Source of the DNA: Dimorphilus gyrociliatus
Lineage: Eukaryota > Animalia > Annelida
Assembly (NCBI GenBank): GCA_904063045.1
Contig: CAJFCJ010000103.1
Span: forward strand, 29,957 to 71,193
Direction: 5' to 3'
DNA length: 41,237 nt
Shown here: piece after piece, positions 1 through 34,529 of the stretch
Position numbering within the stretch: the first letter of the stretch is position 1
Layout: the number at the start of each line of letters is the position of its first letter
The notes under the pieces: generated by a model
What the model saw: only the letters and a program-made list of their open reading frames with translations
What the model was told of the DNA's origin: nothing
Database searches by the model: none
Made by a program: the position numbers and the translations under genes

Positions 1-350
1 TTTTTCAGGCATTACCTTTTCATAGATAATGATCAAGTCTCACTCTATTTTCAATTCATCAACTAATATGTAGAATGAGCCTTTTCAGGTCATATGACTG
101 TTCATTATATTATGACAAACCTCCAAACTGTTTTTTGTTCTAATCGATGGACCAAACACTGACCAATTTTCAGGTTTCCACATGGAATTACATATCCCTA
201 TAATTTCAAAATACAACAGTAGGTCAACAAATTTCTGTTGTTCCAAAGATCAGACTTCAGTCTGCTGGTAATAATGGTAATACAATGATATCCTAAGATC
301 TCTCCATTCTTTTCCTTTCTCCATATATTGTTTGGAATATCTAAACAAAC
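1..350 (-). mobile_element. Decayed MULE (Mutator-like) transposase C-terminal fragment
   Basis: Reverse complement of 12367..12716. It translates to DLLLYFEIIGICNSMWKPENWSVFGPSIRTKNSLEVCHN, matching the MULE W..FG.SIRTNNxxEGWHN motif. Confidence 0.7.
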
Positions 351-572
351 AATCTCAAAGAACATTGAACAATCATGATGTGAATGTCCTTGAATTAGTC
401 CAAGAGGGACTGAAGATCTTGAATGCTGTTTTACACTGAAAATTTCACATACAATTTATCTACCAACTACCCAAGCTGAAATGGGAAATAACAAACTATG
501 ACAGATGAAATCACTATACAATTTGGTGTATGAATATAGAGTGTTATCTAATAAAAAAAGCAAACAACTGAA

Positions 573-3500
573 TCAACTTATGAAGACAAACTGCTTCTTT
601 TTAGCCAGTTGAATTATTCTTTGATTGGAATGTTTTGCCAATTGATTGTTTGACATATTAACTTTAATTATCGTTTGTAATTGCTTTAAAAATTTAAGTA
701 AATCTTCTAAAATGTAATTATCAATTCCAATTGATTGAAAAAACAACAATTCCAATTTGGATGAACTTTGTGTGAGAGATCGTAAAAATTTTTGAAAGGA
801 TTCATTGCCAATTCTGTTGTAGCTTATGTCAAAGAGTCTTAAACAGAATTGCATATTTAGAAAAGTTTGTAGACTTTTGCAAATGATTTCATTCAGATTT
901 GCATTTCTTAATATAATTTCAGTACAATTGATAAATGTACTTGTCATATTTGTAAAAAATAATTTTAAATTGTAAAAATTTACATTCATATTTTGGAAAT
1001 TTAACGCCATTTGTTTTATAATTACTGTACCGTTTGGTGCAGAGTGAATGATACTGCTTTCAATTAAGTTCTTTAATTCTTTAAAGAAACTGGTATTAAT
1101 GTTGAATGGGCAGAATATTTCACTTGTATGAAAGTAGATTAAAGCTAGATTTTTACTCTCTATTGAACATATCTTCCTCAGGGATAGGATGATCTTTTCA
1201 TTATTTTTGTACTTGATTAATATTTCATTGAATTGGTATAGCGTCTTCTTGAGTAGATAGAGAAACATTTTCATATCATCCACATTGTAAATGTTTATGG
1301 GTGAGGTGTTTTCAGACAGATTGATTTCATTCAGAGCTATGAACAGCTGCTTTCTTCCTGGAGATGATGATGGCAAGTCTCTTGAGTTTAATAACTCTTT
1401 TAGGTAGTCTCTTTCTGGAGTGGATGATGATGATGGCCATGATGGTAGTTTAGGATTCAATAACTTTTTCAAGTAGTATCTTTCGATGGATGATAATATG
1501 AATAGTTTACTGGAATTATGAAAAAAATGAAAGATAGCCTGAGGATTATATTTAATAATTCCAGTTGATAAAAGATATCCAATATTTTTTGATGTTAAAC
1601 TGGTAAAGTATTCCACTAAAATATCATTGTTACAATCCATTTGTAATTGGAAATTTCCTCTTTTTTTCATTTCTAAAATTGTTAGAAATTGTTTCATTGC
1701 ACTATCAAAGGCCAAATAACGTTGATTACACTTAAAACCTAAATTCAAAGATACAAGTAAAAAGCACAGAGGATGGGTACAGAATTCTTGAAAACCTTTC
1801 AAACAATGAATTAACATTAAAAATTGTTGTTTAATTGATGAAAGGAAAGATTGACTATTTTCTTTGTAAAAACTGCAAATTTCAATCAAACTTTGTATAT
1901 TTTGTTTTGGTTGAATACCTTCAATCGAAAATATAGAATCAATTGGAATTGATGTTTCGACTAAATTTCTAACAAATATCAACTTTTTTATCTTTTTTGT
2001 GGTGTCTTCTTCAAAGATTTTGTATATTTCATTATTTGAATTATTTATATATTCTTCATTGTCGTCTATCAGTATTATTAGTTTTTCTGGATTACTTTCT
2101 ATAAAGTTTTCTAATTTCTCCTGTATTTTGTGGAGATTTTCTTTTTCATTTTTGTAATTTGATAAGAGAAGATGTTGTAGTAGAGATTTTTTATCTGATA
2201 TCTTCTCTTCCTTTCCATTGAATGAGAGTTTTAATAGTAGATAATTTTGCAGTATCTCCTCAATCGACCATAAATATAGCAGTCTATTTAACAATGTTGT
2301 TTTACCAATTTGTGCAGATCCTACTATACAATTATTTACCGCTGAACCAGCAATACATTTCAAAAATTCAACATCAACTAGACGCTTAGATGATTTGTAT
2401 AGATTAGGCTTAACTTGCAATAGATTTAATGGCATGTACAATTGATTAAAGAATTGAGCACATTTTAGTTGAATAATGTTTCGTGAAATGATTTTTGTTT
2501 GTAATGTTTCGCTGTGTAAATATTTTATTTCCTTCAGAAATTTTATACTGTCTAAATATTGAATATGACAGTTAGATGTTATTTCTAAAAGTTCATTCCA
2601 TTCTGTTAAATGTAGATTTTCACCAAATGTAAACTTGAATGTTTCATTTTCAACAGTTTTCAACATTTTCATTTTAGCTTCAACAATCCATGGAAAAAAT
2701 TTTAAATCGTAAAAACTCTTTGAACTGATTATTTTGATTAGCTGCTTAAAAATTAGCCATCTTATTTTAGGGTCAAAGTTCAAGTTAAGATCTTTCAAAT
2801 TCGGACATTCAATTAGAAATCTAACAATATTGTCTATATCTTTTTCAATAATATGACCCGACAAGTGGAGTACTCTTAAAGACAATGAGGAATTGATCAA
2901 ATGTTCAAAAATATCTGAAAACAATTGTCCACTCTTATTATCTTCTTTCAATGAATCGCTCTCTTCAATTGACCTTGTGCCAAAAGTTATATAGACTTCT
3001 TCAAGATAGTAACAATACTCGAATAGTTGACACAACTCAGTACAACATTTGTCACTTATTTCGCAATTGTTGATATTTAAAATTTTTAAATTGTTATGAG
3101 AATGAAGAAGAGAAGTGAAAATTTTACTCAAACTATTAGAAATATCCCCATTATTGCCAATATCAATTTCATTTATATTTTGACATTTCTCTAGCAATTT
3201 GGCTAAATAATCTCCATCGGTGTCATTCAAATTGCATGAATTGAATTTCAAAGATTGAAGTGGTGAACAACAGAAACTCAACTTCGATAAACAATGATTT
3301 TTATCATTGTTATAATCTTCTTGTTTGAATAGATTCTCATTAAAACTCATATCCAAGTAATGTAAAGATCTGCAATACATGAAGAGTTGACTTAATTGCT
3401 GTGCCTTCTCCTTTTCAGAAAATTTACATGATCTCATAATCAAAAAATGAAGAAAAGGAGCACATGATTTTGCAATTGAAGATATTATGATATCCATACA

Positions 3501-6500
3501 AAATTCATTATAGCTCAAATTCAAGTATTTCAATTTCCTAAAAGCAATAAAGAAATTCTTCATCTTCTCCAAAGCATGATTTCGAAAATCTTCTAACAGT
3601 AATTCTTTAAATTTTTTAACATCTTCATTTTCTGATGATAACGACACTTCCAATAGACATTTTTTGAAATGATTCAATCTATCATCATCATCATCCTTTT
3701 CCAAACTATAGATTCTTTGTAAATCTTTTGAAAGATTTTCAAATAATTTTTTGACGTCACGACATACGAATTGTTGACAATCTAAGTATTCAATTTCCAA
3801 ATGAGGTATTTTCTTAAGAATATTGATAAAAGTATTTAAATCTTGATTTTCCTGAAATTCTGATGTAACGCACTTTTTCAATACATGAAAATTTGATAAG
3901 GATAAATCTTTTAAAAGATAATCTTGAATATCTCTATCCTTGATGTCTTTGATATTTCTTATATTACAATTTGAAATATCTAGATAGAGCAAGTTAATTT
4001 GATTTGGTGTTATGTTTGAATAGAGAATTTCAAAATGTCTACCAACCTCTTCATTTCCACTCAAAATGATACTTTGAATATTCGATAATGTTTTAAAAAG
4101 TTTCCACAATGCTTTTAAACTTTTTCTTGATAGATTACAATTCGAAACATTTAATTTTAAAAGCGTCTTTTTAGACGCTGATTTTGAAAGACCTTTAAAT
4201 ATTTTGCACATTTTTTTCTCATTAATTTCAATATTATCCTGTAACCATAAAACTTTCAAACATTGACTTTTAAGAAGAAATTTACTCAGTTCATTAATTT
4301 CGCTAATTTTTAATTTGCAATCATTAATCTTTAAAATTTTTAATGTTTTTGTTGAAGATTCAATTAAAGATTCGAATAATTTTGAACAAGTATTTTCATT
4401 AATTTCATTTCCGCTTAGAATTAAATTTTCTAATTTTAATGTTCTTTTTATGAAATATTCACAAAAAAAATTAAAGTTGTTGTTATTAAGTTTACAATAA
4501 CTTAAATTGATAGTTTTTAAACATTTCAAAGATTTCATTACACTTTTAAAAACTTTTTCAAATTGTCCACAAAATTGAGTAGTGTAGGATAAATCAACTT
4601 CTGTTAGAAAATGTAGTCTTTTCATCAAATTAATCAGACTTTTATACTGATAATGGTGATTTAAATGACATTTTGATAAATTGATATTTTTCAATTGTTC
4701 ACTCCTCAATTCAAATATTTTCAAATATTCAAAGTCTAGACAAACTATTCCAGATATATGTAAACATTCCAATTGGTTCAATTCCTTAATCATGTGACTC
4801 AGAATATGACAGCCATCTTTATTTAGGTAGCAATTTTCAATTGAAAATTCTTTGATATTATTTTTAATTGAATTGAAACCATACCAAAGAATTTGCATTG
4901 ATGTATCAAGAAATTTGACATCAATGAATTTAATCGACTCTAAACCATTTAACGACGCAAAACAAGTTGATAAAATTGAACTGATGTTATCGTTGATGAT
5001 GACATTTTTCAAATGGAAATATTTCAATTGTTGATATGAATTCTTCATAAAATTTTGAAATACTTGTAAAAATCCAGTCATATTAAAGTTTGTCATTGAA
5101 ATCTTATGTATAGTATTGTTTTTTAATAGATAGGCCATTGAAACTTTAGATTTATCAATCTCATCATTTAGATAGTTCTCTTCTTTCTCTTCTTCGCTGC
5201 TTTCCATATATTTGAGAAAGAATTTATTCTTCTCTTCAAAGGACGCTCCTGGATGGTATGGAATTTCGGAAAATGTTATTAAATTCTTGCCCATGGCGTT
5301 CTTGATGTACTTAAGCGGTTTTTTCAAATTGTGTTTTTCTCTTTCATTTTTGGTTGGAATAATTTGAAACATTTCACCATCATTATTGGAATTAAGGAGA
5401 ATCTTGGGTGAATTGTCTATCTTTACAATTGATATTTCATTCAGTTTTTCATCGTCCTTGTTCTCTTTTTCTCTATCAGGAAGTGATGAAGGATTAGGAT
5501 TGAAAGACATCATATAACTATCTGGAAAATCCTTGTAAATTGAAGAGTAATTTCTCATTGTAACATTACTGTTATCTGTCTTATTAAATGCGAAATTATT
5601 ATTGGAGATGTGCTTGTTACAACAATCAAAAAACTGTTTATAAATCTCTAAAATCTCACAATTTAAAATATTAACTTTTTTTGAAAGTTTACATTTTTCA
5701 ATTATCTCAAAAAATTCTTTACAAAATTCAATTGTTAATATTTTGTTATTAATTGTCATGAACTCTAAAGTTTCTATATCTCTTATCATTTTTACAAATC
5801 CAGTTGTTATCTTATCTCTATTACAGATACTATCGTAGTATAGGCCTATTATTTTTTGTCCTGAATATTCTAAGTCGAATCTTAAGCCATATTTTTCTTT
5901 GACATTTGTTAAGAGGATTGTACGAGTAATTGAATTGTTATCTTTATCTGATAACTTACTTTCGCTCACTTCAACACTATATTTTTTAATTTCTTTCGTT
6001 GTTGATAGAGTTTTATAAATCACATTTTTCAACTTTTTCAACTGTAATACGGATATGAGTAGTTTATGAATATTCATTTCCAAATTATAATGATCAATTT
6101 CGTCATCTTTAAAAATTATTTGTTCCAAATGTTGACAAATATTTATTCTTTCAAAAAAGCCTTTTCTTCCGCAATCTTTCTCTTCTTCTCTAAATTCACA
6201 TTTCGTTAGTCTTAAACTCTCTAATCTACAATGAAACCTTCTAAAGATAATTCCAGATTTATAAGCGTTTAAATTCTCTTCTGTTATAGAAAGTTTTTTT
6301 GGATTATCATTACCAAGGATCAACTCTTTTAGCTTTTTATCATTAAACATTCTATACTTCATGGCTGATTTATCTAATAGTTCCATATAGGTGTCAAAAC
6401 AGTATTTTTCCAAAAATGATAGGATATTATAAATCTTTGGATTTTCAGTTTTTTCAATAACTTTTAAAATATTATAAGTGATGTCTACTCCTTGATCGCC

Positions 6501-7898
6501 CTCCGTAGCCTTTTTCCAATTAGTAAATTGTATTTTTAAATGTTTTGTTGAAAAGTATTCAACTATGAAATTTGAATCAAATTGTAATTTATATTCCACA
6601 GCTTCCGGTGTAGAATTTGGGTCAATAATTTTACAGATAACATTGGAATAACAGTTGACTATTTCGTCTAGTCTGTCAAATTCTTGAATTGGTTCGTTTT
6701 CTTCTCCTATCATATTATTGAAACAAGTGTGAAAGAAATTTTCTTCCGATTTTGTTGGCTCCAAACTATTTCCATATTTAAATATCTGATCTAAAACAGA
6801 ATATGGCGTTTTGTCATTAAACTCTTCTCTCTTCTCTCTCCAGAGGATTGATATTATCATAGCAATCTTTGGAATTCTACTCAATTTTTTTAATTCTGTA
6901 TTGAATTTTAACAATTCGTCACTTTCCTCCTTTAGTATTTTTCTGTAGAATTTTTTAATTTGTTTTTTGTCGAATTTCAACAGTTCATAGATGGCAGTCG
7001 CATTGGCTTTTAAATCAAAATCCCGTAGACTTTCCAACCAAACTATCGTTTTATTTGGATATTTATTTCTTAGTAGATATTTCCTTAAAAAATACTTTTG
7101 CAATTGGCATTCCTTATCCAAATCTATAAGAAGGATTATTCCAGAATTCTCTTGTTCCAATAGACTTTCTAAAGCTTTTTCGCTAATGTAATTAAACATT
7201 TCTCTATTAAAATTTTGCTTTTTTACAACTGTTGCCAACTTTTTGTCGCTTTCCTCTATTTTACTAACATCAACAGAGAGCAATAGTTTGTTTTGATTAG
7301 TGACACCATTAGACCAATTCCAGATGACTTGTTGACGTTGAAGAGTCTTACCCAACCCAGATTTTCCTGTTATTAACCATTTATTAGTCTTTTCTTCATT
7401 CTCGTCAAATATCCTCTCAAAAACTTTATCCTCTTCAAACTCGTCCTCTGAATTATTAAGCTTATTCAACATTTTTAAAGGTATTCTAAAACTGTTCAAT
7501 TCTTCTTTTTTGTGTTGATCATTCTCTAAAATTGGAACCTTTGAAAGTTCTTCTCTTCTCTTTTCTTTAACATTTTCTATTAGATTTTGCCAAAATTCGT
7601 CTTTCTTAGTCTCAGTAAATTGTTTAGCAATTGTATTTGATTGCTGAGTTTTTTGAATATTTAAAAGTGCTCTCAAAGAGATATTTGAATTGAAAATTGT
7701 GTTTATAACTGAATCTATTACATTCGATTTTTTGTTTGCATTATTATAGTCGTTTAAATAGTCATTACCTTGATCATTATTATAGACATTCTCCTGAATG
7801 AGATAGGCAATAGTATAAGTGAAATTGGCGTCATCTTCCAGCAAGTCCGTTAGTTCCCTGTTGTACAAATTCATCAATAATCTGTCAAGAGCATCCAT
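573..7898 (-). CDS. Intronless NLR-like protein, 2441 aa: putative death-fold/CARD, NACHT1, long RI-type LRR region, NACHT2, short LRR tail
   Basis: Uninterrupted 7.3 kb ORF. Walker A GKSGLGKT at aa 178 (7344..7367) with Walker B-like IILLIDLDKE. Second Walker A GSAQIGKT at aa 1860 (2298..2321) with KLIILIDDNEE. Many LxxLxLSxNxL / LxLxxCxL repeats between and after the two modules. In-frame TGA at 7917..7919 lies upstream of the ATG. Confidence 0.9.
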   Translation of the reverse strand: MDALDRLLMNLYNRELTDLLEDDANFTYTIAYLIQENVYNNDQGNDYLNDYNNANKKSNVIDSVINTIFNSNISLRALLNIQKTQQSNTIAKQFTETKKDEFWQNLIENVKEKRREELSKVPILENDQHKKEELNSFRIPLKMLNKLNNSEDEFEEDKVFERIFDENEEKTNKWLITGKSGLGKTLQRQQVIWNWSNGVTNQNKLLLSVDVSKIEESDKKLATVVKKQNFNREMFNYISEKALESLLEQENSGIILLIDLDKECQLQKYFLRKYLLRNKYPNKTIVWLESLRDFDLKANATAIYELLKFDKKQIKKFYRKILKEESDELLKFNTELKKLSRIPKIAMIISILWREKREEFNDKTPYSVLDQIFKYGNSLEPTKSEENFFHTCFNNMIGEENEPIQEFDRLDEIVNCYSNVICKIIDPNSTPEAVEYKLQFDSNFIVEYFSTKHLKIQFTNWKKATEGDQGVDITYNILKVIEKTENPKIYNILSFLEKYCFDTYMELLDKSAMKYRMFNDKKLKELILGNDNPKKLSITEENLNAYKSGIIFRRFHCRLESLRLTKCEFREEEKDCGRKGFFERINICQHLEQIIFKDDEIDHYNLEMNIHKLLISVLQLKKLKNVIYKTLSTTKEIKKYSVEVSESKLSDKDNNSITRTILLTNVKEKYGLRFDLEYSGQKIIGLYYDSICNRDKITTGFVKMIRDIETLEFMTINNKILTIEFCKEFFEIIEKCKLSKKVNILNCEILEIYKQFFDCCNKHISNNNFAFNKTDNSNVTMRNYSSIYKDFPDSYMMSFNPNPSSLPDREKENKDDEKLNEISIVKIDNSPKILLNSNNDGEMFQIIPTKNEREKHNLKKPLKYIKNAMGKNLITFSEIPYHPGASFEEKNKFFLKYMESSEEEKEENYLNDEIDKSKVSMAYLLKNNTIHKISMTNFNMTGFLQVFQNFMKNSYQQLKYFHLKNVIINDNISSILSTCFASLNGLESIKFIDVKFLDTSMQILWYGFNSIKNNIKEFSIENCYLNKDGCHILSHMIKELNQLECLHISGIVCLDFEYLKIFELRSEQLKNINLSKCHLNHHYQYKSLINLMKRLHFLTEVDLSYTTQFCGQFEKVFKSVMKSLKCLKTINLSYCKLNNNNFNFFCEYFIKRTLKLENLILSGNEINENTCSKLFESLIESSTKTLKILKINDCKLKISEINELSKFLLKSQCLKVLWLQDNIEINEKKMCKIFKGLSKSASKKTLLKLNVSNCNLSRKSLKALWKLFKTLSNIQSIILSGNEEVGRHFEILYSNITPNQINLLYLDISNCNIRNIKDIKDRDIQDYLLKDLSLSNFHVLKKCVTSEFQENQDLNTFINILKKIPHLEIEYLDCQQFVCRDVKKLFENLSKDLQRIYSLEKDDDDDRLNHFKKCLLEVSLSSENEDVKKFKELLLEDFRNHALEKMKNFFIAFRKLKYLNLSYNEFCMDIIISSIAKSCAPFLHFLIMRSCKFSEKEKAQQLSQLFMYCRSLHYLDMSFNENLFKQEDYNNDKNHCLSKLSFCCSPLQSLKFNSCNLNDTDGDYLAKLLEKCQNINEIDIGNNGDISNSLSKIFTSLLHSHNNLKILNINNCEISDKCCTELCQLFEYCYYLEEVYITFGTRSIEESDSLKEDNKSGQLFSDIFEHLINSSLSLRVLHLSGHIIEKDIDNIVRFLIECPNLKDLNLNFDPKIRWLIFKQLIKIISSKSFYDLKFFPWIVEAKMKMLKTVENETFKFTFGENLHLTEWNELLEITSNCHIQYLDSIKFLKEIKYLHSETLQTKIISRNIIQLKCAQFFNQLYMPLNLLQVKPNLYKSSKRLVDVEFLKCIAGSAVNNCIVGSAQIGKTTLLNRLLYLWSIEEILQNYLLLKLSFNGKEEKISDKKSLLQHLLLSNYKNEKENLHKIQEKLENFIESNPEKLIILIDDNEEYINNSNNEIYKIFEEDTTKKIKKLIFVRNLVETSIPIDSIFSIEGIQPKQNIQSLIEICSFYKENSQSFLSSIKQQFLMLIHCLKGFQEFCTHPLCFLLVSLNLGFKCNQRYLAFDSAMKQFLTILEMKKRGNFQLQMDCNNDILVEYFTSLTSKNIGYLLSTGIIKYNPQAIFHFFHNSSKLFILSSIERYYLKKLLNPKLPSWPSSSSTPERDYLKELLNSRDLPSSSPGRKQLFIALNEINLSENTSPINIYNVDDMKMFLYLLKKTLYQFNEILIKYKNNEKIILSLRKICSIESKNLALIYFHTSEIFCPFNINTSFFKELKNLIESSIIHSAPNGTVIIKQMALNFQNMNVNFYNLKLFFTNMTSTFINCTEIILRNANLNEIICKSLQTFLNMQFCLRLFDISYNRIGNESFQKFLRSLTQSSSKLELLFFQSIGIDNYILEDLLKFLKQLQTIIKVNMSNNQLAKHSNQRIIQLAKKKQFVFIS
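1357..1484 (-). repeat. In-frame 69-bp (23-aa) tandem duplication, Ser/Pro-rich
   Basis: ERYYLKKLLNPKLPSWPSSSSTP followed by ERDYLKELLNSRDLPSSSPGRK. In the right arm the units start at 11233 and 11302. Confidence 0.85.
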
Positions 7899-8239: not shown

Positions 8240-8525
8240 ACTGTTTTTTCTTCCTTGGATGACACTTTGTGAAATACTCCAAAACATGGCACCATTAGCT
8301 ACACTATTATAATTTGTGAATTTTCTTAAGGCCTGTATCTACATGCAATTCATTTAAATTCTTCCCTTCTGTTACCCTTTCCTTGTTTCTTTTAAGCCTC
8401 TTCACAATCCTACACATTCTTGCTACATCCCTCTCTGTGAGTCTCTTTGGACAACCCCTGTTCTCTTGTTGGGGTGGCTTATATCTTAAAATATCACTTA
8501 AGGATTGTAAGGACATTTTATACAT
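8240..8525 (-). mobile_element. Tc1-like transposase remnant
   Basis: RGCPKRLTERDVARMCRIVK resembles the Tc1 GRPRKLT.RD.R.I.R.V motif. NGAMFWSIS (8270..8296) resembles the SVMFWGCIS motif. The frame is broken. Confidence 0.55.
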
Positions 8526-10325: not shown

Positions 10326-10532
10326 GGATACGACAGAAAACGTCCACAAATTGGTGCTTTTACCCTAACCCTAACCCAGCCCTTAGCTGTACCTAACCTT
10401 TAGCATTAGCCTTAACCCTTAGAGGAGACCCTCCTAAGTACAAATCAGTTGCTGTTTTCTTTTGCCTAACCATTTCTCAATCCAAACTTTTGTCTTGAAA
10501 TTTCTCATTTGTGGACGTTTTCTGTCGACCCC
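10326..10532. mobile_element. MITE-like element with 21-bp perfect TIRs and internal (CCCTAA)n-like repeats
   Basis: cgacagaaaacgtccacaaat (10331..10351) and its exact reverse complement (10507..10527), with imperfect outward extension. Internal accctaaccctaaccc at about 10362. Confidence 0.8.
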
Positions 10533-10779: not shown

Positions 10780-12144
10780 TTGATTTTTTTTTCTTATTTG
10801 GCATCGCTTCATAATAATTGGAACAGGGGGTTTAATGTTCATAGTTTTTACAAAGAAAATAGTCAATCTTTCCTTTCATCAATTAAACAACAATTTTTAA
10901 TGTTAATTCATTGTTTGAAAGGTTTTCAAGAATTCTGTACCCATCCTCTGTGCTTTTTACTTGTATCTTTGAATTTAGGTTTTAAGTGTAATCAACGTTA
11001 TTTGGCCTTTGATAGTGCAATGAAACAATTTCTAACAATTTTAGAAATGAAAAAAAGAGGAAATTTCCAATTACAAATGGATTGTAACAATGATATTTTA
11101 GTGGAATACTTTACCAGTTTAACATCAAAAAATATTGGATATCTTTTATCAACTGGAATTATTAAATATAATCCTCAGGCTATCTTTCATTTTTTTCATA
11201 ATTCCAGTAAACTATTCATATTATCATCCATCGAAAGATACTACTTGAAAAAGTTATTGAATCCTAAACTACCATCATGGCCATCATCATCATCCACTCC
11301 AGAAAGAGACTACCTAAAAGAGTTATTAAACTCAAGAGACTTGCCATCATCATCTCCAGGAAGAAAGCAGCTGTTCATAGCTCTGAATGAAATCAATCTG
11401 TCTGAAAACACCTCACCCATAAACATTTACAATGTGGATGATATGAAAATGTTTCTCTATCTACTCAAGAAGACGCTATACCAATTCAATGAAATATTAA
11501 TCAAGTACAAAAATAATGAAAAGATCATCCTATCCCTGAGGAAGATATGTTCAATAGAGAGTAAAAATCTAGCTTTAATCTACTTTCATACAAGTGAAAT
11601 ATTCTGCCCATTCAACATTAATACCAGTTTCTTTAAAGAATTAAAGAACTTAATTGAAAGCAGTATCATTCACTCTGCACCAAACGGTACAGTAATTATA
11701 AAACAAATGGCGTTAAATTTCCAAAATATGAATGTAAATTTTTACAATTTAAAATTATTTTTTACAAATATGACAAGTACATTTATCAATTGTACTGAAA
11801 TTATATTAAGAAATGCAAATCTGAATGAAATCATTTGCAAAAGTCTACAAACTTTTCTAAATATGCAATTCTGTTTAAGACTCTTTGACATAAGCTACAA
11901 CAGAATTGGCAATGAATCCTTTCAAAAATTTTTACGATCTCTCACACAAAGTTCATCCAAATTGGAATTGTTGTTTTTTCAATCAATTGGAATTGATAAT
12001 TACATTTTAGAAGATTTACTTAAATTTTTAAAGCAATTACAAACGATAATTAAAGTTAATATGTCAAACAATCAATTGGCAAAACATTCCAATCAAAGAA
12101 TAATTCAACTGGCTAAAAAGAAGCAGTTTGTCTTCATAAGTTGA
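10780..12144 (+). pseudogene. 5'-truncated copy of the NLR gene (aa 2009-2441: post-Walker half of NACHT2 plus LRR tail); first in-frame ATG at 10900
   Basis: Protein is identical to the C-terminus of 573..7898 from SFYKENS onward. It has no Walker A/B, and the 63 bp upstream of 10843 are unrelated sequence. Whether it is expressed is unknown. Confidence 0.75.
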
Positions 12145-12716
12145 TTCAGTTGTTTGCTTTTTTTATTAGATAACACTCTATATTCATACACCAAATTGTA
12201 TAGTGATTTCATCTGTCATAGTTTGTTATTTCCCATTTCAGCTTGGGTAGTTGGTAGATAAATTGTATGTGAAATTTTCAGTGTAAAACAGCATTCAAGA
12301 TCTTCAGTCCCTCTTGGACTAATTCAAGGACATTCACATCATGATTGTTCAATGTTCTTTGAGATTGTTTGTTTAGATATTCCAAACAATATATGGAGAA
12401 AGGAAAAGAATGGAGAGATCTTAGGATATCATTGTATTACCATTATTACCAGCAGACTGAAGTCTGATCTTTGGAACAACAGAAATTTGTTGACCTACTG
12501 TTGTATTTTGAAATTATAGGGATATGTAATTCCATGTGGAAACCTGAAAATTGGTCAGTGTTTGGTCCATCGATTAGAACAAAAAACAGTTTGGAGGTTT
12601 GTCATAATATAATGAACAGTCATATGACCTGAAAAGGCTCATTCTACATATTAGTTGATGAATTGAAAATAGAGTGAGACTTGATCATTATCTATGAAAA
12701 GGTAATGCCTGAAAAA
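10843..12716. repeat. Right arm of the inverted duplication
   Basis: Reverse complement of 1..1874 with constant coordinate sum 12717, so no net indel. Confidence 0.95.
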
Positions 12717-14205: not shown

Positions 14206-15573
14206 ATGGGTTGCGGAGCGTCAAGTGTCAAACCTTGCAGACATTTGTATTGTCTGCAATGTTGTCAACTTTTACCAGGAGATAAGTTTGATATAATTTG
14301 CAATCTTTGTTCAGAAGAATTTGAACTAACTGAAGATCAAATTTTAAATGTTAAATTTAGTATTCCGGATGAATCTCTCGAGAAAATATCATTTGTTGAT
14401 AAATTGTGTAAAGATCATAAAACTATTTTATCAACTAGTATAAAACTAAATATTCAATTTACAACTGAAAATTTTCTTGGCTTGTGTGATAGATTAAATA
14501 AAGGTCCAAGTTTATTGACAAGTGTAAAATTTAAACTCTGTCAAATTGATGAGAATTCTTGGAAAACTATTGGTAATACCTTGGAAAAATTTTCTTCAAT
14601 TGAAAATCTAGATTTCAGTAAAAATATTGGAATGGGAGATGGCTTGATAATTATTTGTAAGAGTCTTATTACATCATCAAATAATGTAAAAGATTTGAAT
14701 TTATCAATGTGTATGTTAAGTGAAAATCATTGGATAGAAATTGGGAAAATATTGGAAAATTTTCATAGATTGAAAAATGTAGATTTGAGCGGAAATAGAG
14801 GAATAGGCGACAATGGAGTATTAAATATTTGTGAAGGGTTAAAAAGTTCATCAACTTGTTTGAGATACTTAAATTTAAGTGATTGTAATTTTATATTTTT
14901 GGCTCAATGGGAATTAATTTGTGCATTAGTTGGACAATTATACTATTTAGAAATTGTTGATTTAAGCTATAATACTATACAAGAGAATGTATTGATTCCA
15001 ATATGTAAAGGACTACAATCATCTTTTAATAGTTTAATCTCTATTAATTTTTCATTTTGTAATTTTTCTTCACTTGAATCTAAAGTATTGGGAAATTTTT
15101 TAATGGATATGCCAAAATTACAAAAAGTAAATTTAAGTGCTAATAAACATATGGGAGTTGGATTAGCATTAATCTGCAATGGACTTGTTGAATCATCAAA
15201 TACATTGACAACTTTATCTTTTGTTGATTGTGAACTGAATAATGAACAATGTCTTAACATTGCATATGCTCTGAAAAAATGTCACAAAATAGCTTTCCTA
15301 AACTTGTCTTTCAATACAAACATGGGTGATGGACTAGAGAGTATTTGCGAAGGGCTACTTGTAGCGAAAGATACTCTTCAGTCAATTCTTTGTTATAAAT
15401 GCTTCTTAACCGACAGTCAAAAGAAAGTCCTCCTCTGTTTGTTAGTACTCTGTCCTTCTATGCTTTGTTTGGACATGAGAAATGAAGGCGACATAAATGA
15501 TGGATCAATAATAATAGAAACAATGTTTTTAAGGCTTGAATTCACGGAAAAGATTAAGAAACATCAGAGATAA
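14206..15573 (+). CDS. Intronless 455-aa protein: MGCGASS acylation motif, partial RING-like Cys/His cluster, RI-type LRRs
   Basis: Starts MGCGASS. PCRHLYCLQCC...CNLC gives C-x-H-x2-C-x2-C...C-x2-C. LRRs such as VKDLNLSMCML and LKNVDLSGNRGI follow. In-frame TAA at 14185..14187 upstream. Confidence 0.85.
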   Translation: MGCGASSVKPCRHLYCLQCCQLLPGDKFDIICNLCSEEFELTEDQILNVKFSIPDESLEKISFVDKLCKDHKTILSTSIKLNIQFTTENFLGLCDRLNKGPSLLTSVKFKLCQIDENSWKTIGNTLEKFSSIENLDFSKNIGMGDGLIIICKSLITSSNNVKDLNLSMCMLSENHWIEIGKILENFHRLKNVDLSGNRGIGDNGVLNICEGLKSSSTCLRYLNLSDCNFIFLAQWELICALVGQLYYLEIVDLSYNTIQENVLIPICKGLQSSFNSLISINFSFCNFSSLESKVLGNFLMDMPKLQKVNLSANKHMGVGLALICNGLVESSNTLTTLSFVDCELNNEQCLNIAYALKKCHKIAFLNLSFNTNMGDGLESICEGLLVAKDTLQSILCYKCFLTDSQKKVLLCLLVLCPSMLCLDMRNEGDINDGSIIIETMFLRLEFTEKIKKHQR

Positions 15574-22954: not shown

Positions 22955-25155
22955 TGATTTGCATTTCTGATGATTTACAAGAGCATCATTGTTTACAAGA
23001 AATCAATGATAATTTCCTTTGTAATGATATGAAACAGAGAATTAACTTTCAACTTGTTTGCAATTTCCAAAGAGATTGTTTAGACGGTTCGGATGAGAAA
23101 GATTGTAGTAAGATGATAGAATCCTTTTTTTATAATTTTCACTAAATACAAATGAAAAATTTAGAATATTCAAAGTGTAAAAGTAATGAAAGGTTTGTTT
23201 GTTTATGAGATAATTTCATTCATACTCTAATAACTGTAATAGATATACATAACCACTGTTTACAAGGCGATGACGAAAATGATTGCAGTGAGTAGTCACT
23301 GATGGATAATACTAATAAAAAACTTATTGTCAGCAACCATTCACAACCAAATCTTTTTTAGATGATGAATTCTTTGCAAAAGGATTTTTTATGTGCTATA
23401 ATCATACCAAATTTTTAACTCATGATCAAATTTGTGATCAAATTATTGACTGTAGTGATGGTAGCGATGAAATTCTATGCAAAATTCCAATAATTTTATA
23501 TCCTGGTTACAATAGTTTGACAACTGCTCCTCATAGTCTATACTGTAACTTGAGCAATATTACGAAGAATCAAAAGTTAGCAAACAATACAATTAAAAAT
23601 GCAAACTATTTAAGAAAGATTACAATTACTGGTGAAATATCAAATATAAATCTACTACAAAATTCTACAAATTTAATCATTTTAAAAGTTATTAATAGCC
23701 CAAAATATTTTCAAAATAACCAAATAAATATTCCAAATTTAATTTCATTATCGCTCATTAAAAATCAAATCAAAAATAAATATTATATTTTAAATCAAAA
23801 TTATAAACTTTTATTAAATTTAACAATTTCAAAAAATCCAATTAATTCATTAAATTTTCTAAATAAACTCAAATGCACAAATCTACTTAATTTGGATGTT
23901 TCTTTTACGAAAATAATAACCCTAGCAAAAGTTGATTTTCTTGGATTAACAAAACTGCAAAGTTTAATTATGAGGAATTGTTTAATAAAAGAAATTGATA
24001 AATTGTTATTTAATCATCTAACAGAATTATTAATCTTAGATTTAACAAATACAGAAATTCCATACAATTATCAAACAAATCTAATCATTAATATTAAACA
24101 AATTGAGAAATTTTATAGCACAAATTCCAGACTTTGCTGTCTAATATGGAAATATGTTAATGATAAACTTCAATGTTCTTCGAAATATCAATATCCAAAT
24201 TGCTTAACAATTTTCAATTCAATTTTTGAAAGGGTTATTTACTGGATTATTGGTGCTATTGGAGTTTTTGGAAATATCTTTTCAATAATCCTGACACTAA
24301 GGTCGAAAGCTTCTTCAAAAAAATTTACACTATCATCCAAATTAAGTGGCTTAATGACATCACTATACTTTCTATTAGTAGCAATTATAGATTCCTACTA
24401 TCAGGAAACTTTTATTGAGTATGAAAAGAAATTCCTTCAAAGTATAACTTGCCAAACATTAGGATTTATTGCAACATTTTCATTGAGTTTGTCAATAAAA
24501 AGTATGCTGCTCATATCAATAGAAAGGCATACAGTTGTGATTAACCCTCTAAGACAGATGCAATTTCCAGCGAAACAATATATTTGGCTTGCAATTGCAA
24601 TAGTATTTTCTACATTTGAATCCATCTCTTTCATATTTGTAAATAAGGTGAAATAGTATAATATAAGTACCAGTTTTTACTAACCCATTTTTTTTCCTAT
24701 AAAATAAAGTACTACCATGGCAAAACTTCAAAATGTTTTTCAATGCCTATTCAGACTGCAAAAAAGCTACATTGGACAATTGCAATCTTTTTCTATGGAA
24801 TATTCAACCTTTCCATTAGTTGTATTATACTCATTCTATATGTTGATATTAATAGAACTGTGAGATCAGCAAAAAATGTAGGAAAGCTAATGGGGAAGAA
24901 AAAAGGTGAGAGAAAAATGAAATTAACAATTATTTTACTCTCAGTATGGGCTATTTTCACTTGGTCCCTTATTTCAACGCTAAGTAAATTGATGAGTGAA
25001 AAAAAATAATTCAAAACTTTTTAAATTTTTTAATTTTTAAATCTTTCATATCACATTTTAAATATTTATGGTTCAGTGATAGAGCTTACAGTTGGATAGT
25101 GTTTTTTATACTGTCATCAAATATGATTTTGGATTTAATAATTTTCTATTTATAG
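22955..25155 (+). CDS. Multi-exon LDLa-LRR-7TM GPCR (GRL101 / LGR type C-like)
   Basis: LDLa motifs CNFQRDCLDGSDEKDC, CLQGDDENDC and CDQIIDCSDGSDEILC, then LRRs. TM1 YWIIGAIGVFGN, TM3 CQTLGF...ISIERH..INPL. Phase-compatible introns include one ending at 23361 and 24648..24709. TM5/6 lie in 24743..24983 and the TM7-like segment WIVFFILSSN at 25081..25155. The last splice junction is not resolved. Confidence 0.85.
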
Positions 25156-30890: not shown

Positions 30891-33800
30891 TCACGTTGAT
30901 AAAATATTATCTTCCAAGAATTTGTTAGAATTTTGTAGAATTAGTTTATTTTTTTCTTCACTAAATTGATGACAGTTTAAATAGGGATCAACAGAAAAGA
31001 CCACAAATGATATTTTGTTATCTTGATTTCGGATTAAAAAATTGTTGTTGATTATTTTTAGACACTTTGAGGAAGAAATTATGGCTGTTAAATATTTATT
31101 AAATTCCTTATTACCAGTCAAATTCACCTCTCTGAGTGCTGTGCAACTCTTTATTAAACTATAGAAAACTAAGGCTTCCATTTTTGTTAAATTGCAGTGA
31201 GCTATGTTAATTTTTTTTAATACTTTTGATGATGATATAAGTGCTTGGAAAATCAAGTCAACATCTTGGTTTGATGACACATTTATATTTTCTATTGAAG
31301 AATGGTGCTCAAGTGCTTCTCTAAAATAAAAGGCAGTATCAATAGCAATTCCACATACTGATATATTAATGTCTTTAAGTTTTTTACATTTCAGTGACCT
31401 AAATATCTCATAAAATGCTTCCTTAATGTTTTTATTTCCTGACAGGTCCAGAGTTTTTATCTTTTCACATTTCTCAAGTGCTTTTCCAAACAATTCTGCT
31501 TGTGTTTTAGAAAGATTACAGTGAGACAAATTTATTTCTTTTAATGAGTTACCATTTGACCACTGTTGACATATAGATCGGAATCCGTCTCCCATTTCCT
31601 TGTTATTGGATAAATCTATAACTTCTAAAAATGGACAAACTTCTATTAACTCTTGTAGACTGTGAGCATCAATTTGATTTAGTTTACAATTAGAGAGTTT
31701 CAGACTTTTCAATTTTTTAGAACAGTTTTCAAAAATCTTTTCAAATTCATTGCCTAATTCTTCATTTTCAGAGAAATCAATGGTTTCTAATGAAGTACAT
31801 TGTTTCAATATTTTTGAAAGGGAATTTGCATCTCTTTTACTCAAGAAGCAGCTTATCAGTTTCATTTCACTTAATTTTGAAGAGGATGACTTTAATCCAT
31901 CACATATTGTTTCAAAAGCTTCTTCACCTAATCTATTATATGATAAATTAAGACTTTCTAATGAAGTACATTTTTTCAAAGTATCTCCAAGCCATTTTCC
32001 TTGTTTTTCAGTCAGATAACAATTTTTCAAGTTTATTTCTTTTATAAACTCCCATGATGAAGATATTCCATTGCAAATATTTTTAAATCTATCTCCCATT
32101 AATCTATTGTTAGATAAATCTAAACATTGTAGTGATGAGCAAGATTCTAGAAGAATTGCCTCTGTTTCATTTAAACAACAATATTTAAGGTATACTTTTC
32201 TTAAACTTTTAAAACAGTTGCTTCCAAACTTTCTTCCCAACTCTGCATTGTGATTTTCTGATAAATCTAAAATTTCCAGGCAAGAGCAACTTTGAATAAT
32301 TTTGTGAAGATTTTCAGCTTGTTTGACATTTAGACTGCATTGAACTAATTTTATTTGTTTTGGATGTTTTAAAGGAGTTTGCAATCCATCAGATGTTATC
32401 TGGAATATTTCTCCTATTTGTTTATTATGTTATAAATCAATATTTTCTAGTGCAGAACAATGTTTAAGTGTTTGTGCAAGAATTTTAATTTCCTGCTTAT
32501 TCAAAAAGCAGTTGGAAACATTGATATGAGTAATTTTTTGTGATGCTAGTCCTTCACAAACTGCATTAAATCTATCTCCCAACATTCTGTTGTTTGAAAA
32601 AATTAAAATTTTTAGTGAAGGACAATATTTTAAAACTTTTCCAATATCTTTCAGAGTCTGCTCTTTCAAATAACAATCCCTTATTTCCAATTGCTCTAAT
32701 TTCCACAAATAATTTGATAAGAGTGCATGATTTGAACCATAATCTGAAAAAACTGTATCATATATTATCAGTTTCTTTAAACCATCTGCCTTTGAGAAAA
32801 GCAATTCAAATAAAAGTTTAGTGTTGATATTTGTATTGACAATCTCTACCATTTCTAAGAACTCTCCAGTCTTTTCTATTAAAGTTTCCAGAATATAATT
32901 GTGAATGTCGTCATTTTCTAGAATCATGGTGTGACAGTCATCCGAATCTTGACATAAAATCTTTTTGACATTGTCACTACAATTGTACATTTTTAGTACC
33001 AGTTCAGAGTAGAGTATATATTATTAAATATGTCTTGCTTATGTTCTTTTATAAAGTCAATGACATTATAAATAGTGGAATTATTTGTTGTTCTCAATAA
33101 ATTATCCATAGTAGACATTAAATTTTTGACTTCATTTTCTTTATATTGCATTATATTTTCAGAAATTTTGCTGAAAAAAACTCTTGAAATGATAAATGAT
33201 AGAAATGTAGTTCTCTCTTATCAAATTCAGCTGGAATAATCTGCAATAAGCCTTGTAAACCCTCTTTAAAAAGTTTTTGATCAGTGCTATCTTTAGGTAA
33301 GATAATTTTGTTTTTAGCAAGATTCATGAAAGACAATTTACAAAGACGGTTTTGGTCGGTTTTATTTAACATTTTTCCATTCTTTATGCTTTCTCAACAA
33401 GATCTTCATAAATTTCATATAGAGATTTTTCACAAATATCTTCTTTTTCAATCCAAACATGAAAGACAATCATTGCCAAAATTGGAATTTTACACATCTT
33501 TTTAATGTTGGAATTATTATTTATAATCTTTTCAATAAAGTTTTTGCTTTTTTCCTTGGAAATAAAACACTTAGCAAAGAAATTTTCCATTTGATGAGGA
33601 TTCCACCCCATTAGCTCAAATGCAATATCACAGGTACTTTCAAATTCCTGTCCCTTCCATTTGCGAGACCATATTGCAGTAGGAATATTTGTTTTTTGTT
33701 GATTAAGGATATCATTGATTTGATGATTTTTTAAATGAAATTCATCTGCTCCTGCTAAAAGCAATATTACATCATTTCTTTTTTCAGTGAAAAATAATTC

Positions 33801-34529
33801 AACAATTTTAGCATCAATGAATGAAATATTTTTAAAGTTTTGTTCTACAATCTCCTCATAAATACTTTTTTCTTTTTGGACATTCTTCAGAATGAGAAAT
33901 ATAAACAGTTTGTCATTATCATCAATCTGGGACCACTTAAAGAGAACACTTTTCATGTGAACACTTTTTCCCACTCCAGGTATTCCTTCAATTAAGATTT
34001 TATTTTAAGATTTCTTGTAGAATATCTTAAAAAAATTGTCACAAGTCACTTCTGTGTCTACAAGTTTTCTTTCAATGATATTCTCAGATGTTGTCTTTAA
34101 CATTTTAATTGGAGTATTGATATCTTCAATTCTCACTTGTTTTGTCCCACCAAACGGAAGAAGTGAAATCATACAACAATCATTCATCCTCTGTTCCTTT
34201 GTGGCAGCTACTAATATATGCCAAACAGATGTCTGATCTTTTACTTTTTCTCTCAGTTGTCCAGCTTGTTCATTACCCTTATCACTAATTGTTTTTAATA
34301 TTTTAAGTGTTTTATCTATTGAAATTTCACTGAGATAATCCAGCAGCTTCTGGACTGCTTTTGTTTTTTTCTGTTGATCTGCTAATTCTATCTGGAGAGT
34401 TTCTTTTGATGCAAAACTACTCAATCCTTGTTGTTGTGCACACATTGGTAGCATTTCACTTTCTTTCATAAATAAGGTTTGGATATTTTCCCTGTGGTAA
34501 TTGAAACTCAGTCTTTCTTTTGAAAGCAT
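30891..34529 (-). pseudogene. Intronless CARD(putative)-NACHT-LRR NLR pseudogene
   Basis: Reads FYKKS*NKILIEGIPGVGKS (in-frame TAA at 34005..34007 before Walker A), Walker B-like VILLLAGADEF and winged-helix FYHLSFQEFFSA. Frameshifts near 33390, 33160 and 33020. In-frame TAA at 32430..32432 (IDL*HNKQIG), then LRRs to 30891. Confidence 0.85.

Follow-up and report, generated by a model that had tools for sequence, protein, structure and literature searches.

A probable annelid NLR gene with two NACHT–LRR units in one reading frame

Animal NLRs are taken to carry one central NACHT switch, and cooperation between a sensor and a helper NLR is known between separate proteins, for instance NAIP and NLRC4 or the paired NLRs of plants. 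Does a locus of the annelid Dimorphilus gyrociliatus encode two such switches in a single polypeptide? The question is raised by an open reading frame (ORF), here called G1, on the minus strand of a 41,237-nucleotide stretch of contig CAJFCJ010000103.1 (assembly GCA_904063045.1), which is the window analysed throughout. An earlier reading made from the sequence alone described G1 as a single intact frame of 2441 codons with two Walker A motifs about 1680 amino acids (aa) apart, each with its own pre-NACHT segment, Walker B-like strand and LRRs, and all of these features were recovered by motif positions, Pfam NACHT matches and LRR periodicity. We conclude that G1 is probably a genuine, intact gene of D. 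gyrociliatus encoding an NLR-type STAND protein of 2441 aa. From the N-terminus, a helical region is followed by NACHT1, a helical or other middle region and a long ribonuclease inhibitor (RI)-type LRR array; a linker carrying a pre-NACHT strand then leads to NACHT2, behind which come a helical part and a short RI-type LRR array. In window coordinates, the main features are:

573-7898, minus strand: the whole ORF G1, 2441 codons plus stop, overlapping the public gene model DgyrCDS14929
7494-7898, minus strand: N-terminal helical region, aa 1-135, without death-fold signal, common to the paralogues and a neighbouring NLR
6927-7376, minus strand: NACHT1 nucleoside triphosphatase (NTPase) domain, aa 175-324, with Walker A at 7344-7367 and Walker B at 7110-7139 (Pfam, 24.8 bits)
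2799-5081, minus strand: LRR1, a long RI/NLR-type array at roughly aa 940-1700, from motif periodicity and profile matches to fish NLR LRR arrays
1896-2462, minus strand: NACHT2 nucleotide-binding domain (NBD) with pre-NACHT strand, aa 1813-2001, with Walker A at 2298-2321 and Walker B at 2052-2081, from Pfam and predicted fold
576-1295, minus strand: LRR2, a short array of predicted RI-type fold, aa 2202-2441, modelled at a predicted local distance difference test score (pLDDT) of 76-92

G1 begins with ATG and has no internal stop over its 2441 codons, whereas the other two minus-strand frames contain 238 and 284 stops and the plus-strand frames 115-240. The GC content is 27%, and in DNA of this composition so long a frame cannot be open by chance. 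The two Walker A motifs, GKSGLGKT (aa 178-185) and GSAQIGKT (aa 1860-1867), are spaced by 1682 aa. Each P-loop is preceded by a pre-NACHT motif (FRIPLKML, aa 137-144; LYMPLNLL, aa 1820-1827) and followed by a Walker B-like strand (IILLIDLDKE, aa 254-263; LIILIDDNEE, aa 1940-1949). Motifs of the LxxLxLxxN type recur with a period of about 28 or 57 aa across aa 991-1604 and 2251-2410, and the Pfam LRR signals are weak.

The Pfam NACHT profile (PF05729, gathering cut-off 26.7 bits) scores 50.5 bits on the whole protein, in two stretches, and module 2 alone (aa 1857-1978) scores 33.0 bits, above the cut-off. NB-ARC, at 18.8 bits, is under its own cut-off and weaker than NACHT. An AlphaFold model of aa 1700-2441, built with an eight-row alignment, has a mean pLDDT of 57, with values of 64-84 for the NBD of module 2 (NBD2) and 76-92 for LRR2. 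All top Foldseek matches of the module 2 model are NLRs, led by NOD2 (2e-11) and followed by NLRP3, NLRC4 and NLRP1. In VIA-align comparisons, aa 1813-2001 superpose on the NLRP3 NACHT domain 7alv with Z 14.0 and a root-mean-square deviation (rmsd) of 3.2 Å over 163 residues, and on 8ri2 with Z 13.7 and an rmsd of 2.6 Å over 158 residues; aa 2202-2441 match RanGAP, ribonuclease inhibitor and the NLRP1 LRR with Z 12-14 and an rmsd of about 3.5 Å over about 190 residues. Thus, a NACHT NBD fold is predicted for module 2 only, and the C-terminus is predicted to form an RI-type LRR array. The sequence-only reading had staked its second module on a NACHT profile or fold match for aa ~1850-2130, and the 33.0-bit score and the superposition on NLRP3 supply one for the NBD part of that region. 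For aa 1-560, which span module 1, AlphaFold run on the single sequence gave a pLDDT of 34. Searches of PDB sequences with G1 by phmmer and profiles returned nothing significant (best NOD2, E 0.4), and an NCBIfam scan gave only noise.

Is the double layout peculiar to this locus? Module 2 (aa 1800-2230) was searched exhaustively with HMMER against 1.84 billion representative proteins, with four matches in all: P0002 (2270 aa, E 3e-40, matched at 1600-1921), P0003 (2233 aa, E 1e-38, matched at 1644-1969), P0004, a D. gyrociliatus model of 569 aa, and P0005, a crinoid NLRC4-like protein (E 2e-5). P0002 and P0003, which come from Logan assemblies of SRR23372216, SRR23372228 and SRR23372229, are collinear with G1 across aa 1-2422, their identity to it being 24-31% (about 28%); BLASTP pairs G1 103-2422 with P0003 102-2212 and G1 1-2147 with P0002 1-1921, and the multiple alignment agrees. 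Module 1 of P0002 scores 36.3 bits against Pfam NACHT. In module 1, G178, G183, K184 and D259 are invariant in all three proteins; in module 2, G1860, Q1863, I1864, G1865, K1866, T1867, D1945, D1946, E1948 and R1977, the last being the putative sensor-1 residue of NACHT2, are invariant, as is P2043. A C-x-h-P-L motif about 40 residues past each NBD is likewise shared by the three. The earlier suggestion that selection had kept the frame open is upheld: the frame is under evident constraint.

The two modules differ in their conservation. Between paralogues, identity is 39-42% for NBD2, the best conserved part, and 24-36% for the NBD of module 1 (NBD1); NBD2 thus evolves more slowly than NBD1. 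When a hidden Markov model (HMM) built on module 1 is run against the paralogues, it matches their module 2 over about 320 positions (5e-11 and 1e-10); the two units therefore descend from an old duplication of one NLR unit. A maximum-likelihood tree places the three NBD2 sequences in a clade with 100/100 support, apart from the NBD1 sequences, which group at 81/85 with a neighbouring single-unit NLR located 25 kb off in the window; the latter grouping is tentative because the NBD1 branches are long. Since three proteins only 27-31% identical are collinear from end to end and keep both nucleotide sites invariant, the doubling is old and constrained. The head-to-tail fusion of two NLRs that had been proposed from the sequence thus stands as a doubling of the NLR unit, but not as a recent one: it is common to three divergent proteins, and NBD2 forms a fully supported clade of its own. 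Probably, the head-to-tail doubling of an NLR unit preceded the divergence of the paralogues, and both nucleotide-binding sites have been retained since.

This family of double NLRs is small and very divergent, with G1, P0002, P0003 and one decayed copy in the D. gyrociliatus genome as the members recovered so far. The decayed paralogue (L006; CAJFCJ010000036.1, 6263-9836) corresponds to G1 aa 487-617, 744-1357 and 1518-1950, pieces that are spread over three frames and separated by a deletion, and P0004 covers only part of it. A profile of the family pulls fish NLRC5-like and NLRP12-like proteins through their LRR_6 arrays. A word search with the family profile was dominated by fish NLRs with long LRR arrays, of which those checked have a single NACHT. 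Two other sequences, L004 and L005, were considered as full-length P0003 mRNAs and rejected: L003 reads through the (CT)n run and the A-run at which they end, and these ends are therefore ordinary assembly breaks.

Both Walker B motifs depart from the NACHT consensus hhhhDGhDE, as first noted from the sequence, and read hhhhD-L-D-K-E and hhhhDD-N-E-E. The accompanying idea that one or both modules might be nucleotide-binding only is, however, not favoured, since the acidic residues D259 in module 1 and D1945, D1946 and E1948 in module 2 are invariant. Judged from this conservation, the departed motifs do not suggest lost hydrolysis, least of all in module 2. The winged-helix His, which had looked lost in the sequence-only reading, would fall in a region modelled at pLDDT below 50, where the conserved C-x-h-P-L motif is the one feature seen.

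The N-terminus had been provisionally labelled a CARD, and this label found no support. No CARD, PYD, DD or DED was matched in G1 by Pfam at E up to 5 or by PDB profiles, a feature search of the Atlas with aa 1-135 yielded no lead, and the single-sequence fold is the low-confidence one described above. A divergent N-terminal death fold may nevertheless be present. Ahead of NACHT2 (aa 1750-1840), where a degenerate death fold had also been envisaged, there is no Pfam or PDB-profile support for one, and the helices there are predicted at low confidence.

How does G1 relate to the public annotation? In a whole-protein word search the closest, and sole, match is DgyrCDS14929 of D. gyrociliatus (1842 aa, 99% identical), whereas a word search with the NACHT2-LRR2 piece gave no match. 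This model lies on the same contig, and the window is 100% identical to the scaffold. It consists of ORF aa 1-43 and 62-1853 followed by seven frameshifted residues; G1 itself is continuous, and the model places two short introns in it:

7715-7768, minus strand: 54-nt in-frame 'intron' of the public model, GTAATG..ATAG, aligned with residues in the paralogues
2284-2339, minus strand: 56-nt 'intron' of the public model, GTAAAT..AATAG, whose removal takes out precisely the second P-loop and, by a frameshift, leads to a stop at 2260-2262

DgyrCDS14929 ends early because the predicted 56-nt intron deletes the second P-loop and shifts the frame. Of the alternatives to a double NLR, the one that fares best, although it is unlikely, takes this model at its word: the 56-nt intron would be spliced, the expressed product would be the 1842-aa single NLR, and NACHT2-LRR2 would be untranslated or made separately. 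Indeed, both predicted introns have GT..AG ends and a normal size for D. gyrociliatus, whose median intron is 66 bp (PMC7854359), and no RNA evidence contradicts such a product. Against it, the supposed intron encodes the GxAQIGKTT P-loop that is invariant in the paralogues, and a further 580 codons remain open in frame at 27% GC; the downstream part is conserved in the paralogues and includes NBD2, their best conserved region, and the public annotation calls no gene on it once DgyrCDS14929 has ended. The invariance of the P-loop and the 580 open codons indicate that the 56-nt intron is most likely a prediction error. The genome paper of the species (PMC7854359) makes no mention of NLRs.

A second alternative concerns the 3′ end of G1, which lies in a perfect inverted repeat: window positions 1-1874 are a 100% inverted copy of 10843-12716 (1874 nt).

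1-1874: left repeat arm, holding codons 2009-2441 (the last 433; about 1.3 kb) and at least 572 nt of 3′ flank, ending at a gap
10843-12716: right repeat arm, a 5′-truncated duplicate of the 3′ end of the gene, with a mechanically called ORF at 10780-12144 on the plus strand

In the public scaffold, 3228 N adjoin position 1 of the window, and the 3′ codons therefore lie inside a repeat arm at a contig end, a classic warning sign of a misjoin. The last 433 codons could then be an assembly chimera, the true gene ending or continuing otherwise after aa 2008. In keeping with this, the perfect copy of an internal segment sits exactly at the contig end by the scaffold gap, the assembly was made with PBcR, HaploMerger2 and SSPACE-LongRead (PMC7854359), and a contig of the RNA-seq-like run X2 that crosses position 1874 runs on into the flank of the other copy. 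A chimera is nevertheless very improbable. P0002 and P0003 align without a break through the junction at aa 2008/2009, which is flanked by conserved motifs (GIQPxxN before, EFCTHPLC after), whereas the right copy has an in-frame stop 21 codons before 10843 and no NLR-like sequence was found upstream of that position. Because the right copy lacks an upstream NLR and the paralogues align through the junction in G1, the gene-side junction is native and the right arm is the 5′-truncated duplicate. Furthermore, in the Logan contigs of the DNA run X1, which is possibly not independent of the assembly, k-mer depth is 206-339 over the arm and 108-118 over unique sequence (2-3 times higher), which suggests 2-3 real copies; an X1 unitig terminates exactly at 1874, which is what two real junctions with different continuations in the reads would produce. 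A missed-adapter PacBio palindrome was rejected as the source of the repeat, since such artefacts leave no 9-kb spacer. The last 1.3 kb of G1 was copied recently, in inverted orientation, 9 kb away. An invertible cassette that swaps the C-terminus was also considered and rejected, given that recombination of identical arms flips the spacer and leaves the coding sequence unchanged.

The repeat and its surroundings hold some further features. At position 154 the contigs of several runs are interrupted, and the segment 154-187 is covered by 34-nt contigs of far greater depth; X1 depth rises to 791 over positions 1-200, indicating a short high-copy element in the 3′ flank of G1. Within the spacer, a telomere-like repeat, CCCTAACCCTAACCC, occurs at 10363-10377, 466 nt before the right arm; chance alone would give none (0 in 100 shuffles). 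A Pfam scan of the small spacer ORFs found nothing, and a Tc1-like helix-turn-helix remnant at 8307-8525 was an impression only, without support.

Evidence from reads was taken from assembled contigs. X2, of 2017, resembles RNA-seq in its patchy cover and in one contig that skips a GT..AG segment:

1603-1685, plus strand (corresponding to 11032-11114, minus strand, in the right arm): 83-nt intron, GTAAAG, a polypyrimidine tract and TTAG, antisense to the ORF and skipped in an X2 contig

This contig continues with the reverse complement of 10813-10842 and was therefore assigned to the right copy. Consequently, the truncated duplicate is transcribed antisense. The resulting RNA is 100% complementary to about 1.2 kb of the 3′ coding region of G1; it might regulate G1, or it might form part of a long upstream transcript.

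Several points weigh against reading G1 as an intact double NLR. Taken alone, module 1 (aa 175-324) scores 24.8 bits against Pfam NACHT, slightly under the cut-off of 26.7, and in module 2 the part expected to hold helical domain 1, the winged-helix domain and helical domain 2 (aa 1995-2203) is modelled at pLDDT below 50. The assembled contigs do not show the full ORF on one mRNA, although nothing in them speaks against it either; over the unique part of the ORF, X2 cover is thin and confined to 2775-2958 and 5078-5249 (depth 2.5-2.9), and the sole RNA-like contig over the repeat boundary is the spliced antisense RNA of the other copy. The left arm is a contig end beside the 3228-N gap. X1 is possibly the same run as was used to polish the assembly, which deprives its support of independence. 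Finally, the mechanism proposed below is drawn by analogy alone, from NAIP/NLRC4 and plant NLR pairs.

G1 could instead belong to a decaying family and have been inactivated recently or be barely in use, its frame open and its function gone, as the very thin RNA-like signal over the unique ORF, the frame changes and deletion in the decayed paralogue L006 on another scaffold, the in-frame TAA of the neighbouring NLR and the rearrangement of the locus by inverted duplication would allow, but zero stops in 2441 codons where about 200 are expected, together with the integrity of every catalytic motif, make this highly unlikely. An intact gene for a double NLR remains the probable reading of G1.

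Judged by homology and predicted fold, the product of G1 would be a cytosolic STAND-type receptor that joins two ATP-driven switch units covalently. Conservation of both nucleotide-binding sites argues that both units may cycle nucleotide. The asymmetry between a fast NBD1 with a long LRR1 and an N-terminal domain and a slow NBD2 with a short LRR2 suggests a sensor/helper-like division of labour, in which the faster-evolving unit 1 would most likely sense and the conserved unit 2 would most likely be the partner that controls or drives oligomerisation. By analogy, G1 might then be a sensor/helper NLR pair fused in one chain, a possibility that we advance only tentatively. A fuller scenario is that the units are non-redundant members of such a fused sensor-helper, that capture of a ligand by NACHT1-LRR1 frees NACHT2-LRR2 to oligomerise, or the reverse, and that the complementary antisense RNA of the inverted 3′ duplicate tunes G1 expression; that all of this holds together is doubtful. 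If true, it would offer a direct in-cis test of how one STAND switch activates another.

Further coding regions lie elsewhere in the window. The single-unit NLR at 30891-34529 (minus strand) resembles module 1 (G1 aa 53-384, E 1e-18) and has LRRs at 31071-32687. It carries an in-frame TAA at 34005-34007, just ahead of the P-loop, and more stops after about aa 390, and for this reason it is probably a pseudogene. A 455-aa ORF at 14206-15573 (plus strand), publicly called as a gene, starts with MGCGASS and has RI-type LRRs like those of LRR1 (27-31% identity, E ~1e-6) without a NACHT domain. The ORF at 23391-24656 (plus strand) has a partial rhodopsin-type seven-transmembrane match (32.6 bits) with traces of low-density lipoprotein (LDL)-receptor class A and LRR sequence, and has the look of a single exon from an LGR-type receptor gene.

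How, then, does G1 compare with known systems? By its NACHT profile, NBD fold and LRR type it is an animal NLR, with its unit doubled and without a recognisable death-fold head. It shares with canonical animal NLRs such as NOD2, NLRP3 and NLRC4/NAIP the NACHT P-loop NTPase, the pre-NACHT strand and C-terminal RI-type LRRs, as well as the C-x-h-P-L motif of the helical domain that follows the NBD, and its NBD2 model superposes on the NLRP3 NACHT domain. Unlike them, it has two NBD-LRR units per chain rather than one, lacks a recognisable CARD, PYD, DD or BIR, and is so divergent in sequence that phmmer matches no solved NLR. P0002 and P0003 match G1 in the order of their parts, are collinear with it throughout and likewise conserve both P-loops, whereas G1 is longer (2441 versus 2233-2270 aa), with an insertion at about aa 2150-2185, and it alone has the inverted duplication of its 3′ end. 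For the annotation of D. gyrociliatus, G1 corrects a public model cut at the second P-loop, and it provides an example of innovation in the NLR repertoire of a strongly compacted genome. The locus also illustrates that perfect inverted duplications at contig ends can throw doubt on real genes and that collinear paralogues can settle the question.

Outside animals, two STAND NTPase domains in one immune-receptor-type chain are found in rice BPH18, a CC-NBS-NBS-LRR protein (PMC5041133), and in wheat WTN1, a tandem NB-ARC protein (10.1101/2024.08.30.610185). In these plant proteins, however, the domains are NB-ARC and not NACHT, the origin is independent, and the neighbouring NBDs have a single LRR array between them, whereas those of G1 lie about 1680 aa apart and each has its own LRRs. 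The coupling of a unit that senses to one that executes, an idea familiar from plant sensor/helper NLR pairs, may be applicable to G1 as well. Among animals, our full-text literature searches gave no description of a family with two, tandem, double, dual or multiple NACHT domains per protein. Animal database proteins annotated with two NACHT and LRR domains have been remarked on in passing; these carry an N-terminal BIR, and no evidence was given for a conserved layout or against a merged gene model. In G1, by contrast, the double layout lies in one uninterrupted ORF and is common to divergent paralogues, and such a conserved two-switch family offers a construct, made by nature, in which communication between two STAND ATPases can be studied.

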